DNA of 64,000 nucleotides, taken from the sequence record NC_049340.1; one strand, given 5' to 3'. The notes below the pieces were generated by a model that saw only the letters and a program-made list of their open reading frames with translations, was not told the origin of the DNA and did not search any database. A program made the translations under genes and the position numbers. Numbering within the stretch: position 1 is the stretch's first letter; every line of letters starts with the position of its first letter. This document shows positions 35,686 to 55,068 of this stretch, piece by piece.

Positions 35686-37203
35686 ATGCAGAAATTAGAC
35701 AAAGCATTTAGATTAAATTCAGCTTATTATTCAGATGGATATAAGATTGGACATAAACAAATGTTAGCACCAAACACAGACTTTTTATATGGAACATGGA
35801 TTCCACGTTCTGTTAAATATGCACCAAAGGGTGTTAGTAAAGTTGTATCAGCAGGACATCAGTTTGCATGGCGTTGGTTACACTCAGAGTATCAAGAAAA
35901 CTTCTTTAATACACCAGTAGAGGATGCAATTAAATTTGTTGAAGATTTAAACATGTACTTAAACTTACCTTATAATGGTGAACACTTTATTGAGTTACAT
36001 AAATTAGGGTACTTACCAATTAGAGTAAAGGCATTAAAAGAGGGTGTTGAGACAAATCCAAACATCCCACACCAAACATTTGTTAATACAAAGGCTGGTT
36101 TTGCATGGTTAACTTTATACTTAGAAACAATTGTATCAGCATTATCATGGAGATTTTCAACATCAGCTACTATTGCATTACAATATAAAAGAAATGCATT
36201 AAAAGCGTTCAACGAAACTTGTAAAGAGGCGTTACCAGTATTACCATATCATTGTCACGATTTTTCAGCAAGAGGTTTAGACCCATTTACAATGATGGCA
36301 AGTGGTTTAGGTTTTGCAACATCATTTAGAGGTTCTGATACATTAGCTGTTATACCAAGTGCTAGATACTTCTATGATGAACCTGAAAATGAAGTTGTAA
36401 TTAATTCTGTAAATGCATCAGAGCATAGTGTATCAACAACAAAAATCTTTACTGTTGGTGAAAAGCAAATGATTATTGATTGGTGTAAAGAGTTTCCTAC
36501 AGGAATCTTATCAATTGTAGCAGATACTTTTGATTTATTCAAATTAATTACAGAGTACTTAACAGACCCTGTTGTTAAACAAGCTATTTTATACCGTGAT
36601 GGAACAGTTGTAATTCGTCCTGATAGTGGTGACCCTGTTGATATTGTATGTGGTAAGAATACTGGTAGATTAGCAGGAATGTATGGTGAAGCACAAAGAG
36701 ATTTCCCTGATTTAAAAGGTGTTGTTGAATTACTTGGTGACATCTTTGGAACAACTACAAACGAACAAGGTTATAAAGTATTAAATCCTAAAATTGGTTG
36801 TATCTACGGTAATACTATCACCGTAGATAGACAAACAGCAATCTACGAAAGATTAAAATCTAAAGGGTATGCATCTTGTAATATTGTTTTCGGTGTTGGT
36901 TCTTTCACATTAGGATACCAAACTAGAGATAGTTTAGGGTTTGCTTGCAAAGGTTCATGGTTTGAGTGTGATGGTAAAGGTCATAGTATTTACAAAGACC
37001 CAGCTACCGATGATGGTACTAAAAAATCATTAAAGGGTAAAGTTGCTGTTCATTATTCATATGCTGATGGATATGTTGTACAAACAGAATGTACAGATGC
37101 GGAAGAACAAAAAGGTGAATTACAAGTTATTTACGAGGATGGTAAATTCTTCAACCAAACAACTTTAACAGAAATTAGAGAAAATATTGATAATATTTTA
37201 TAA
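35686..37203 (+). CDS. nadV: Nicotinamide phosphoribosyltransferase (NAMPT)
   Basis: SDGYKIGH, HDFSARG, ASEHS, SIVADT, VIRPDSGDP, GVGSF, KDPATDDGTKKSLKG. Confidence 0.92.
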   Translation: MQKLDKAFRLNSAYYSDGYKIGHKQMLAPNTDFLYGTWIPRSVKYAPKGVSKVVSAGHQFAWRWLHSEYQENFFNTPVEDAIKFVEDLNMYLNLPYNGEHFIELHKLGYLPIRVKALKEGVETNPNIPHQTFVNTKAGFAWLTLYLETIVSALSWRFSTSATIALQYKRNALKAFNETCKEALPVLPYHCHDFSARGLDPFTMMASGLGFATSFRGSDTLAVIPSARYFYDEPENEVVINSVNASEHSVSTTKIFTVGEKQMIIDWCKEFPTGILSIVADTFDLFKLITEYLTDPVVKQAILYRDGTVVIRPDSGDPVDIVCGKNTGRLAGMYGEAQRDFPDLKGVVELLGDIFGTTTNEQGYKVLNPKIGCIYGNTITVDRQTAIYERLKSKGYASCNIVFGVGSFTLGYQTRDSLGFACKGSWFECDGKGHSIYKDPATDDGTKKSLKGKVAVHYSYADGYVVQTECTDAEEQKGELQVIYEDGKFFNQTTLTEIRENIDNIL

Positions 37204-39449: not shown

Positions 39450-40008
39450 ATTAGAATTAGAATTAGTTAGCAAGTGTTGGGAACTTAACTTGGATAAGAT
39501 TCTACACGGTGACCACTACAATATTGGTGATTTTACTGTACATACGGATGTTAAAAATGAGAACCGAAACGATGCAAAAACAAAAATTATGAAAGATATT
39601 CATTGGCTTTGTGGACTTAATTTAAATGATAATGATGAGACAGAAGTTACATACTTAAATATTCCTATAAAGAGGTGTAAAGTTGGTGATAAGTTTTTAT
39701 TTGAGGGTGAACCTAAATCAAAATATCAAATAGAAGAAATTCTAAAGGAACGTAAGCGAATTGATGAGTTGAAAAAGTTTGCTGAGGACAACAAAGGTAA
39801 GTTCTGCTACATACAAAAATACGACTACTATAAACCAAATAGAAGTGGTTATACACAATATAGAACAAAGGCTGGTGTTTATGAAGTAGCTGATGCGGTT
39901 GATTCTGCAATTAAATGTAGAGATTTATCATTAGTTCTTATTGATATAGATGAACACAATAAGAATATACTTGAAGAAATTGAAGACCTTAAAACAAGAT
40001 TATTATGA
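39439..40008 (+). CDS. Hypothetical protein
   Basis: 189-aa ORF. Confidence 0.7.
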   Translation: MKNKLELELVSKCWELNLDKILHGDHYNIGDFTVHTDVKNENRNDAKTKIMKDIHWLCGLNLNDNDETEVTYLNIPIKRCKVGDKFLFEGEPKSKYQIEEILKERKRIDELKKFAEDNKGKFCYIQKYDYYKPNRSGYTQYRTKAGVYEVADAVDSAIKCRDLSLVLIDIDEHNKNILEEIEDLKTRLL

Positions 40009-40323
40009 GAACGGTAACAATAGTACAAGTTTGGAATGAATTTGACATGAGTAAAAATGATACGTACCCAAAATCTGCTGGTAAGTATCTAGTTGATATA
40101 TTTCACAGCGTTATATACAGAAATGTATAAAAACGTTATTACAAATTTCAATGGCATAAAACATTATTTATTATGTCATTTACTACATCAGAAAACCCAG
40201 TTCAATTACATACCTTAGAGAAAGGTACGCGTTTTGTTAAATCATTTAGGGGGTTTTTGCGTCTTTTTCATTTTAAACATTTTAAATATCTTTTATTTTT
40301 TCTTTATTGCTGTGTCTTCTTTG

Positions 40324-40713
40324 CTACTCATTTTCTTCTTTTATTATATTCGAACTTCCTAGTACTTCCATTGCTTCTTCATCTGATATGCAGTGCGCTA
40401 TTCCTATTACTTCCCCATCTTCGTCAACTTCTATATATGTATAAGTTTCTTTTATTTCGTATGTATATACATCTTCTTCAATTATTTTCATCCCTTCCTC
40501 TAGGTCTTCCTTTTCTATTATATATTCTTCTCTAGATATATCATATATTCCTCCTTCTATTTCCACGTATTCATCCCCGTGTTTTCCCTCGTGAAACTCG
40601 TTAAACATTATTTTTGTGAATGTTTTTCTTGCTTCTTTGTAGTTTTCTTCTTCTATCGTGTTTATTAACTTAGGTTCTTGCCCCTCTCTTTTTTTGTAAA
40701 TGTTGTAAATCAT
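40324..40713 (-). CDS. Highly acidic hypothetical protein; the only credible minus-strand gene
   Basis: 129 aa with about 30 Glu and 7 Asp versus 14 Lys/Arg; has its own promoter; atypical codons (GGG/GGA, ATA). Confidence 0.8.
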   Translation of the reverse strand: MIYNIYKKREGQEPKLINTIEEENYKEARKTFTKIMFNEFHEGKHGDEYVEIEGGIYDISREEYIIEKEDLEEGMKIIEEDVYTYEIKETYTYIEVDEDGEVIGIAHCISDEEAMEVLGSSNIIKEENE

Positions 40714-40738
40714 CTTTGTTTATTTTTTGTTTCTTCTA

Positions 40739-40769
40739 CAAATATAGTTCTTTTATTGCATATATGCAA
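40739..40769 (-). promoter_or_regulatory. Minus-strand sigma-A promoter
   Basis: Reverse strand: TTG, 20-nt spacer, TATATTTG (top strand caaatata 40739-46); palindrome ttgcatatatgcaa spans the -33 box. Confidence 0.75.
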
Positions 40770-40881
40770 CTTTTATTTGTTAAATATTGCTTAAATGCTT
40801 GTTTTTCTTTTTTTAAGGTGTTTTTTGTAAATTTGTTAAATATGAAATATGGTAAGGTACATACAGACAGTATTATAATGG

Positions 40882-40923
40882 TTAGTTCTAAAACACGGTG
40901 GTACCACCGTGTTTTAGAACTAA
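40882..40923. repeat. 42-bp perfect palindrome
   Basis: ttagttctaaaacacggtggt|accaccgtgttttagaactaa. Confidence 0.9.
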
Positions 40924-41162
40924 AAAGGTCGTAATATTAACAATCTTGTTAACTGGTTTTCAAAATTGTCTTATTATAAATGGTTGAAAATTTTTGAATT
41001 TGAAAAAGGGAATGTTGGTAAAAAATATTTTTATCATACTTCTACAGGGTCTTATGGTTTTTGTTGATTTAAAAAATCTTATGAAGATAAGATGAATAGT
41101 GTTCCTGAGAAACACAAAGGATTTTTGCGAAATCAATTTAAACGATTATATGGTAATTAGGA

Positions 41163-41231
41163 TTTGTGTATGCAAATCATTTTTCTTATATTTGAATAAT
41201 CAAATTTTGAACAACCATACATATATAAATA
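41163..41231 (+). promoter_or_regulatory. Sigma-A promoter followed by ATACATA and TATAAATA
   Basis: TTTG 41163-66, 20-nt spacer, TATATTTG 41187-94; ATACATA 41217-23; TATAAATA 41224-31. Confidence 0.65.
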
Positions 41232-41240
41232 AAGAACACT

Positions 41241-41549
41241 ATGAGCAACGTAAGATATAAATCATTAATGGAGTCTGTAAAAAATTCTTTCTTTAAGGAA
41301 GAAATTAAAGATTTTTATCCGTATTTATGGGAAGATATGGAAACTTTAATTAAGCCATTATTAGATACTAGATATAAAGTAACTTATGATAAGAAAAATG
41401 ATATATTTTTTATTTATAAGGGTGGTAAAGAAGTTATCAGATATGATAGATATGATATGATTTTATATACTGATATTCCAAAGGCTGATATTTTTATGGA
41501 TGTTCAGTATAACAAGAAATTAGATAAACTTAAAAAACATTTCAAATAA
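41241..41549 (+). CDS. Hypothetical protein (possible head-packaged protein)
   Basis: N-terminal MSNVRYKSLMESVK. Confidence 0.65.
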   Translation: MSNVRYKSLMESVKNSFFKEEIKDFYPYLWEDMETLIKPLLDTRYKVTYDKKNDIFFIYKGGKEVIRYDRYDMILYTDIPKADIFMDVQYNKKLDKLKKHFK

Positions 41550-53437: not shown

Positions 53438-53971
53438 ATGCAAAAAGCAATTATTATCATTTTATTTACATTAGTAACCGCATTAGGTATTGGTTATGTA
53501 GTAATGAACATTAGTTATGGAAACCAAGAACAACGCCTAAGAAACTCTATTGAGAATAAAATTGAGGCAAACCAATCACATTTTTCAAAGATGCAAAATA
53601 TCATTTTCGGAAATGCTGAGGTTGCTAAGAAGTATGCTGAGGATTTCAAAAAGATTTATCCTGATTTAATTGCAGGTAGATATTCAAAGCACCAAGGAAA
53701 AATGATGCAATGGGTTCAAGAATCTAATCCGAATTATTCTACTAAACTATTAGAGAATGTACAAGTACAAATAACAGCACAACGTGAATCATTCCATACT
53801 ACACAAACACAATTATTAGATTTAAAACGTGTACATGATGACTTACTAACCACATTTCCTGGTTCATTCTTCTTATCTGATAAAGAGCAAATCAACGTAC
53901 CAATCATTAAGAATGCTGGTGTAGAGAAAGTATTTGAGACAGAAACCGAACAACCTAAATCATTATTTTAA
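53438..53971 (+). CDS. LemA-like membrane-anchored protein
   Basis: N-terminal transmembrane segment, SYGNQEQRL, helical body, ending ...LTTFPGSFF. Confidence 0.6.
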   Translation: MQKAIIIILFTLVTALGIGYVVMNISYGNQEQRLRNSIENKIEANQSHFSKMQNIIFGNAEVAKKYAEDFKKIYPDLIAGRYSKHQGKMMQWVQESNPNYSTKLLENVQVQITAQRESFHTTQTQLLDLKRVHDDLLTTFPGSFFLSDKEQINVPIIKNAGVEKVFETETEQPKSLF

Positions 53972-55068
53972 TGGAGTGGGGTTCATTATTGCTACCGATT
54001 TTTTTATCAGTAGCTTGTTTTTTTCTATACAAACATAAACTTGTTTGGTTTGAAGTTGTACTACCTATATTAGCTAGTTTAATAACCATGTTAATATTTA
54101 AGTGGGTTGCTGTGGGTAAGTTGACAGAAGATGTTGAGTTCTACACAAACTATCCAACAGAAGTTAGATATTATGAAAGATGGAATGAGTATATACACGT
54201 AACATGTACACGTACAATATCATGTGGTAAGGATTGTACAACAACCGTAACATATGATTGTTCATATGTGAGGAATTATAGTGAATATTGGGGAGTATAT
54301 CTTAATGATGGTTCTAGCTATTATATTTCACAATCAACATATAATTACTATGTTAGATTATGGAAAGCAACACCAAAATTTGTTAATATGCATCGTGATT
54401 ATCATTCTATTGATGGTGATATGTACAAAGCTAAATGGAATGGTGATTTCAATACAATTGACCCATGGGTTCGTAAACACACCTACGAAAATAAAGTACA
54501 GGCGGTTAATTCTGTAATGAAATTTAGTGAACTATCTGAGGAACAAAAGAAAGGTTTATATGATTACCCACCAGTTAAGAACAATGAGCAGGATGCGTGT
54601 TTAGGTTGTAATATTTCTGATAATGATTTTCTAAATAAATTGAATGCTGTTTATGGTAGGTCAAAGGAAATTAGAGTTTTAGTATTGGTATTTGATAATC
54701 CTGATATAAGTATAGCTGAGTTACAGCAATCATTTTGGAAAGGTGGTAATAAGAATGAGTTAGTTGTTTGTTTCGATAAGAATAATAAATGGGCAAAGGC
54801 GTTCTCATGGTCTGATGATAAGCTATTAGAAACTGAATTGAATATTTTATTCCGTGATAGTTCATTGACAACAAAACAAAAGATAGCAAAGATGTATAAA
54901 TTAATCCCAACTAAATGGAAGCGTAAAAACTTCTCGGATTTTGATTATATAAAAATTGATTTAACACCTAAACAATTGATATATCTATACATCATAACAT
55001 TTATTATTAGTCTTGGTTTTTTGTTATGGGGAATCCATAATGATATTGATGAAGATACATTTTATTAG
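53971..55068 (+). CDS. Membrane protein with a TPM-like extracytoplasmic domain
   Basis: Two N-terminal and one C-terminal transmembrane segments; VLVLVF..AELQQSFWKGGNKNELVV. Confidence 0.55.
   Translation: MEWGSLLLPIFLSVACFFLYKHKLVWFEVVLPILASLITMLIFKWVAVGKLTEDVEFYTNYPTEVRYYERWNEYIHVTCTRTISCGKDCTTTVTYDCSYVRNYSEYWGVYLNDGSSYYISQSTYNYYVRLWKATPKFVNMHRDYHSIDGDMYKAKWNGDFNTIDPWVRKHTYENKVQAVNSVMKFSELSEEQKKGLYDYPPVKNNEQDACLGCNISDNDFLNKLNAVYGRSKEIRVLVLVFDNPDISIAELQQSFWKGGNKNELVVCFDKNNKWAKAFSWSDDKLLETELNILFRDSSLTTKQKIAKMYKLIPTKWKRKNFSDFDYIKIDLTPKQLIYLYIITFIISLGFLLWGIHNDIDEDTFY

Follow-up and report, generated by a model that had tools for sequence, protein, structure and literature searches.

Morons of lambdoid phages are promoter-gene-terminator units inserted between phage genes. 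In the acr-aca operons (Aca1-13, AcrIIA1-NTD), one or more small anti-CRISPR (Acr) cargo genes lie directly upstream of the HTH_3-type helix-turn-helix (HTH) gene of an anti-CRISPR-associated (Aca) regulator on a mobile element. Inverted repeats within the core promoter of acr genes are the binding sites of Aca repressors (PMC9410906), and host copies of the AcrIIA1 HTH adjoin CRISPR-Cas loci, where they can serve as “anti-anti-CRISPRs” (bioRxiv 10.1101/787200). The locus considered here, the gene PTm1_ORF-134 (ORF-134) and the small inverted island around it, lies in a 64-kb window (the whole stretch of DNA analysed, 64,000 nucleotides of NC_049340.1) that is 100% identical to Tenacibaculum phage PTm1 (AP019524.1) and to PTm5, lytic jumbo phages whose host is the fish pathogen Tenacibaculum maritimum; window coordinates equal those of AP019524.1 minus 62000. 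On sequence comparison, ORF-134 is demonstrably a recent capture by the PTm1 lineage from a T. maritimum temperate phage. The donor cassette is anti-CRISPR/Aca-like in architecture and resembles the acr-aca operons in its small cargo gene directly upstream of an HTH_3 gene on a mobile element, in an inverted repeat within its core promoter, in the varied cargo found ahead of a conserved HTH and in a host copy of that HTH beside cas genes. In contrast to those operons, the cassette cargo, a putative inhibitor, has no homology to a known Acr, the PTm1 gene is an orphan whose HTH partner has been lost, and most members of its family have no HTH neighbour. The cassette likewise resembles a moron in having its own promoter, flanking terminators, a foreign codon composition and a presence or absence that varies between related elements, and the PTm1 unit occupies an intergenic gap in opposite orientation; unlike a typical moron, however, this one has passed out of a temperate phage and into a lytic jumbo phage, losing its regulator in the process. 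The features on which the comparison depends are as follows.

40324..40713, minus strand: acidic protein gene PTm1_ORF-134 (open reading frame (ORF) list, annotation as hypothetical, composition, homologues, dN/dS, AlphaFold 2 (AF2) model)
40255..40825, minus strand: island homologous to the T. maritimum prophage cassette, comprising promoter, acidic gene and start of the HTH gene (blastn and alignment)
40739..40746, minus strand: -7 promoter box TATATTTG, of the Bacteroidota type TAnnTTTG (read from sequence; conserved in the prophage alleles)
40756..40769, no strand: perfect palindrome of 14 bp, TTGCATATATGCAA, between -33 and -7; the -33 element is its outer TTG
40293..40331, minus strand: 5' stump of an Xre-HTH gene, 12 codons followed by TAA (translation; alignment to the intact 79-aa genes of loci L002 and L006)
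40094..40253, plus strand: segment A, a second foreign piece, ~94% identical to another T. maritimum contig (contig matches)
40815..41084, no strand: right flank, ~90% like metagenome contig X2 record 5 (contig match)

ORF-134 is a real gene under purifying selection, and not a chance ORF, because homologues exist and the dN/dS ratio against the L002 allele is 0.20 (0.117/0.591); the ratio is also ~0.2 between both T. maritimum alleles. Its product of 129 amino acids (aa) contains 37 acidic (D+E) and 14 basic (K+R) residues, exactly as a preliminary description had counted by hand, giving an isoelectric point (pI) of 4.34 and a net charge of -23, and is per residue about twice as acidic as the most acidic plus-strand ORF of at least 80 aa in the window. 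The gene had also been singled out there as the only credible one on the minus strand, and this is borne out, as the minus strand carries just 2 of the 97 annotated coding sequences of the window, the other being a doubtful 44-aa ORF (PTm1_ORF-156). The unusual codons that had been remarked upon are real for glycine, encoded by GGA or GGG at 9/9 positions (71% of PTm1 glycine codons are GGT), and for isoleucine, encoded by ATA at 16/19 (35% in PTm1), but GAG is not enriched, making up 17% of the glutamate codons versus 31% in the phage. Third positions are T in 17% of codons versus 41% in PTm1, and the codon likelihood of ORF-134 is the lowest among 64 genes. The PTm1 genome contains no second copy of the island.

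The suggestion of a recent insertion is strongly supported by cassettes of the donor type in T. maritimum prophages. By blastn, the island is 91.8% identical, gaps included, to loci L006 and L007 (597 columns, with 16 mismatches plus indels; ~97% at aligned bases) and 82.8% identical to L002-L005. Within the ORF, 5 of 366 nt differ from the L006 allele (98.6% identity), four of the changes being non-synonymous and one synonymous, and T. maritimum genomes have annotated protein counterparts with 96% and 77% identity to the ORF-134 product. The 77% allele resides in a prophage with the order integrase, small genes, lipoprotein (minus strand), acidic gene, HTH_3 gene, cI-like repressor, YqaJ exonuclease and single-stranded DNA-binding protein, and there the 79-aa HTH_3 gene overlaps the acidic gene by ATGA. 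In L006 (530-567) and L007, the acidic gene carries a 27-nt tandem duplication at its 3' end, which creates a different C-terminus and a shifted stop, and the HTH gene begins 20 nt later, without overlap. The prophage cassette is flanked on both sides by similar terminator hairpins and, being bounded in this way, constitutes a classical moron. PTm1 retains its promoter, putative operator and acidic gene, while the regulatory HTH gene has been reduced to the stump; sequence of the HTH remnant is recognisable to ~40254, beyond which homology fades.

The junctions of the island indicate a mosaic. Matches to segment A (X4 record 6 and X2 records 3 and 4, from an isolate run and a fish-gut metagenome) leave PTm1 at 40253, exactly where the match to the cassette-bearing contig begins, and PTm1 has thus joined two host-derived pieces at this position. 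An attempt to trace segment A by scanning viral contigs for an exact pattern yielded nothing, and a DNA search of 401 Flavobacteriaceae genomes gave low-complexity matches only. On the right, X2 record 5 matches 40815-40882 and 40954-41084 at ~90%, and its other end matches L006 841-870, the terminator after the HTH gene, at 28/30 positions; as judged by these matches, this contig is the empty form in which the cassette flanks are joined without the cassette, and the flanks of the island look host- or prophage-derived as well. A third PTm1-like phage (a 45.5-kb contig from run X1) carries the island at the same place, with the prophage residues R52 and E111. In this contig a stretch of 100 nt (40213-40312), including the 40253 junction and the HTH stump, is exchanged for diverged sequence of equal length, between flanks that are 95-99% identical to PTm1. 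The direction of transfer is from prophage to PTm1, because the cassette is complete in prophages, because the codons of ORF-134 do not fit PTm1, and because the third phage carries the prophage residues. Of the comparison across related genomes that had been proposed, the prophage donors and a cassette-less junction were found, but a PTm1 relative without the island was not: the flanking proteins ORF-133 and ORF-136 had no match in IMG/VR, and a search of the phage collection for PTm1 relatives returned PTm1 and PTm5 only, which are identical at this locus. It had further been proposed that a plus-strand gene starting at 40005 runs into the island. That ORF stops at 40130; the one that enters the island is the plus-strand ORF 40173..40535, the start of which lies in segment A and which continues antisense through the island, explaining the impression of a gene entering it. 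This read-through is a matter of chance, afforded by the stop-poor antisense strand of a glutamate-rich gene. The unannotated 41-aa ORF at 40005-40130 (plus strand) overlaps the stop of ORF-133 with its start by ATGA.

The promoter ascribed to the island in the preliminary description is confirmed on the minus strand, with TTG (40769-40767), 20 nt and TATATTTG (40746-39) ending ~25 nt ahead of the ATG. TAnnTTTG serves as the -7 box of PTm1's own promoters as well, and the pattern TTTG-N17-21-TAnnTTTG is found 22 times in the window versus 5.5 expected, 20 times on the plus strand; the 22 sites are mostly intergenic and mostly carry TATATTTG. PTm1 seems to use host-type promoters throughout the 64-kb region. 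The palindrome TTGCATATATGCAA occurs once in the window, within the island promoter, and an identical or near-identical site is present in the cassette promoters of L002, L006, L008, L047, L048, L052 and L089, the common form being TTGCA-N4-TGCAA between -33 and -7. TTGCATATATGCAA is presumed to be the operator of the lost HTH repressor. A second motif, GTGTCAATAA(C/T)TAATA, is found in several cassettes, in the leader immediately ahead of the cargo or HTH genes (L008 2785-2800; L047 ~3700; L048 ~1935 and 2412; L049 ~3965) and is absent from the T. maritimum/PTm1 version; it may be another regulatory site.

The HTH partner is one of the Xre proteins of 79-90 aa that form a family of 62 clusters in Flavobacteriia and their phages; it matched only the generic HTH_3 and HTH_26 models, the libraries searched including none specific for Aca proteins. 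At L002-L007, L008 and L009 a small cargo gene lies directly upstream of a same-strand HTH gene on a mobile element. Across its loci, the HTH is preceded by at least four unrelated types of cargo, or by none, as listed below.

T. maritimum alleles, L008, L009: acidic family
L047, L052, L092: 66-aa protein
L048, L089: unrelated 135-aa acidic protein
L091: 90-aa protein
L049-51: solo HTH copies, no cargo

Further, in a type II-C locus (L099) of the Flavobacteriaceae genome G022, an 89-aa homologue of the HTH is encoded in the interval separating cas9 from cas1; along its whole length it shares 43% identity with the L008 phage HTH. The cas9 product of this locus is 1373 aa long and contains RuvC_III and HNH_4 domains, and downstream of cas1 come cas2 and CRISPR repeats. 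A direct repeat of ~40 nt, derived from the cas9-cas1 spacer region, is present on both sides of the HTH gene (L099 7540-7995), as if the gene had been inserted as a discrete unit. Two type IX secretion-related genes (CHU_C and PorP/SprF) interrupt the CRISPR array downstream in L099.

The family to which the acidic protein itself belongs numbers at least 159 clusters at E <= 1e-3 (exhaustive HMMER and profile search), nearly all of them metagenomic, none named and none with a Pfam domain. The conserved motifs are Y-x-I-Y-K-K-R-D-G-Q, E-A-K-K-x-F-A, G-x-Y-D and E-D-V-Y-T-W-E, with G11, A28, G55, G74, D81 and V82 invariant; the core of the family corresponds to residues 1-90, and a C-terminal extension like that of PTm1 is present in about a third of the members. 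All of the aligned members (124/124) are acidic, with pI values of 4.05-5.24 (median 4.29), and despite this acidity K7, K8, R9, K29/K30 and R88 are near-invariant in the 124-member alignment. In phages, family members are positioned in the gap between integrase and repressor, before the terminase, in the gap between tail genes and integrase, after lysis genes, and in arrays of small acidic early genes, while among Flavobacteriaceae the gene is sporadic (1-2 of 401 species genomes). The structure prediction that had been recommended gave a confident model, yet one matching no solved fold: supplied with an alignment, AlphaFold returned a beta-rich fold with three helices (predicted local distance difference test (pLDDT) 93.5; predicted TM-score (pTM) 0.84), which replaced a poor single-sequence AF2 model (pLDDT 57.8), and Foldseek searches of the PDB and BFVD gave nothing at E <= 1e-3. 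The best VIA-align scores were Z 5.5 (9lkj_A), 4.9 (PaaB), 3.9 (AcrIF9) and 3.5 (Dmd), and because all are within the stated noise range of the tool, they were not used as evidence. The first of these, a 77-aa chain of the entry “Cas9-sgRNA-A27”, was rejected as a relative, its Z of 5.5 extending over just 52 residues and lying in the noise range. Sequence searches of Pfam, PHROGs, NCBIfam, PADLOC and the PDB found no match for the acidic protein, and the ESM Atlas no usable one. The family thus comprises uncharacterised proteins of Bacteroidota phages with a predicted fold for which the searches returned no solved relative. In the neighbourhood of the family member of L009 (7912-9295 of a 194-kb metagenome contig), genes for an N6 methyltransferase, an ArdC-N-like protein and a SymE-like toxin are carried on the opposite strand, and these surroundings look like those of anti-restriction type.

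Taken together, these data allow a model to be constructed in which the ORF-134 product is an anti-defence protein, possibly directed against the type II-C Cas9 of the host, a proposal that is tentative and held at a little short of even confidence. The earlier proposal of an anti-restriction or anti-CRISPR protein gains circumstantial support from the acr-aca-like cassette, the varied cargo and one cas-embedded HTH homologue. T. maritimum strains carry type II-C Cas9, restriction-modification (RM), Mokosh and other defence systems, and strain 902, the assembly of which contains the prophage cassette L003, has II-C Cas9, type II RM and Mokosh. The donor moron consists of a terminator, a host-type promoter with a putative inverted-repeat operator in its core, the acidic gene, a translationally coupled Xre-HTH gene and a second terminator. 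In the model, the HTH would serve as an Aca-like autorepressor and the gene ahead of it as anti-defence cargo, since a cassette working like an acr-aca operon would imply such a role for the cargo. In PTm1, the cargo could be made from a promoter read by the host sigma factor as soon as the DNA enters the cell, with no cis-encoded repressor to restrain it, and shut-off in trans by the HTH of a resident prophage or a host copy could still occur. The acidic protein may then bind and block a host immune protein stoichiometrically, the likeliest target being the type II-C Cas9 carried by T. maritimum. Contact could be made through the invariant KKR(D/E)GQ hairpin and the EDVYTW strand, and the acidic surface may imitate nucleic acid, the invariant basic hairpin arguing for a specific contact site. 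Among characterised inhibitors, the AcrIIC families offer a parallel in that the suspected class of target, II-C Cas9, is present in the host and in their similar size; unlike them, ORF-134 has no sequence or structural relation to AcrIIC that could be found.

Several observations weigh against this proposal. The palindrome and -7 pattern also occurs in 29 IMG/VR viral contigs that have neither this HTH nor the acidic family downstream, so the motif is not confined to the cassette. The HTH adjoins the acidic gene at just 4 of the 35 family loci examined (the T. maritimum alleles, L008 and L009), making the pairing a property of a subgroup that includes the donor of PTm1; most family members stand alone in arrays of small early genes, without this HTH. 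The linkage to cas genes was seen for 1 of the 10 HTH matches obtained at E <= 1e-8 in 401 genomes, 6 of which were inspected (the weakest four are longer frames of 111-145 aa), and a second sample of 400 genomes added no cas-linked HTH. In the libraries searched, nothing in the sequence or fold of the acidic protein matched a known Acr, Ocr or ArdA. Finally, it is unusual for an anti-CRISPR to have so broad a family with ~20 near-invariant residues, a pattern better explained by a conserved target or ligand.

A bolder extension of the model, speculative and considered clearly less probable than the anti-defence role as such, is that Bacteroidota II-C Cas9 would find its first anti-CRISPR in the acidic family, which would have a new fold, that the 79-89-aa Xre partner would form a new Aca family with the operator TTGCA-N4-TGCAA, that Flavobacteriaceae may have co-opted the repressor in a cas9-cas1 operon as an anti-anti-CRISPR, and that the jumbo phage would escape this control by carrying cargo and operator without the repressor. 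If the anti-defence role is true, the locus would provide a candidate inhibitor, with its regulator and operator, against the defences of an important fish pathogen, with relevance to phage therapy of tenacibaculosis, and may yield an inhibitor of the large type II-C Cas9 enzymes of Bacteroidota. The locus also illustrates very recent gene flow from a temperate to a lytic jumbo phage in which donor, junctions and empty-site form are all visible, and the protein family it defines is widespread and has a confident model to which no solved structure corresponds.

The principal competing explanation is that the acidic protein binds or inhibits a conserved host component, such as RNA polymerase, a nucleoid protein, a repair enzyme or (as a sponge) a nucleotide signal, for host takeover in many Bacteroidota phages. 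The size of the family and the strong conservation of KKRDGQ, EAKKxFA and EDVYTW are consistent with such a function, the conserved basic and aromatic residues could form a ligand or phosphate site, and the long arrays of small acidic early genes without HTH, as at L016 and L021, are where most members occur. However, the closest relatives of ORF-134 occupy regulated accessory cassettes and not core modules, the gene is sporadic among the Flavobacteriaceae genomes, it has moved between unrelated phages of one host as is typical of accessory conflict genes, and a member of the HTH family accompanies a cas9 locus. A conserved host target is on this balance regarded as unlikely, though it deserves more weight than the remaining alternatives.

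Somewhat less probable still is a classical DNA mimic that blocks restriction, in which a rigid acidic surface copies the DNA backbone and fills the DNA groove of type I RM, BREX or a similar enzyme. ORF-134 shares with Ocr (T7 gp0.3) and ArdA a small size, a very acidic composition, carriage by phages or mobile elements and early-type expression signals, here the host-type promoter, and a net charge of -23 over 129 aa in a wholly acidic family, the RM systems of T. maritimum genomes and the methyltransferase and ArdC-N genes near the family loci of L008 and L009 are all compatible with mimicry. However, Pfam, PHROG and PDB searches gave no match to Ocr or ArdA, the beta-rich fold predicted for ORF-134 is like no DNA mimic, and invariant K7, K8, R9, K29/30 and R88, in part forming a conserved basic hairpin, would be unexpected in a pure mimic. 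The DNA mimicry put forward in the preliminary description therefore found nothing in its favour from the protein beyond charge: neither Ocr, ArdA nor a solved Acr proved similar, and the family has its invariant basic cluster.

An alternate scenario would have the cassette benefit the prophage, with the acidic protein and HTH acting as a toxin-antitoxin- or anti-repressor-like pair or in superinfection exclusion, and with the orphan copy of PTm1 used against competitors or resident prophages. The site between integrase and cI-like repressor, beside a lipoprotein gene, is the usual one for lysogenic conversion or exclusion functions, the two genes overlap by ATGA, and the HTH gave weak matches to HipB- and antidote-like models. 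However, these matches are far under the curated cut-offs (24 versus 79 bits), the acidic protein has no toxin-like or catalytic signature, and most family members have no partner; in addition, the same HTH follows unrelated cargos, which argues for a regulator rather than a dedicated partner. This scenario is accordingly judged improbable. That ORF-134 is a neutral passenger, a recently acquired fragment unexpressed by or useless to PTm1, is very improbable, for although the insert is pieced together from fragments, its HTH gene is broken and the five changes separating PTm1 from L006 (4 non-synonymous, 1 synonymous) are too few to show constraint after transfer, ORF, promoter and operator have stayed intact while the adjoining HTH gene decayed, and the island is kept in PTm1, PTm5 and the third PTm1-like contig.

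Three further features were recorded in and beyond the vicinity of the island.

40882..40923, no strand: 42-bp perfect palindrome (opposite-strand self-match; RNA fold -29.4 kcal/mol, z -8.2)
40213..40230, minus strand: short hairpin lying downstream of the acidic gene (minus-strand fold, -10.6 kcal/mol; z -3.2)
53955-54089, minus strand: PTm1_ORF-156, 44 aa, overlapping the ends of plus-strand ORFs and covered by the longer plus-strand ORF 53971-55068; probably not a gene

The 42-bp palindrome begins 57 bp past the end of the island promoter, occurs once in the genome and is replaced by 70 other bases in X2 record 5; considered as a canonical terminator, it does not fit on either strand. The short hairpin is followed by a T-run on the plus strand only. 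Rfam and tRNA scans of 39900-41300 gave just one sub-threshold hairpin match. A nicotinamide phosphoribosyltransferase gene (ORF-130, 35686-37203) is located 3 kb upstream of the island, and phage NAD+ salvage genes have been linked to counter-defence.

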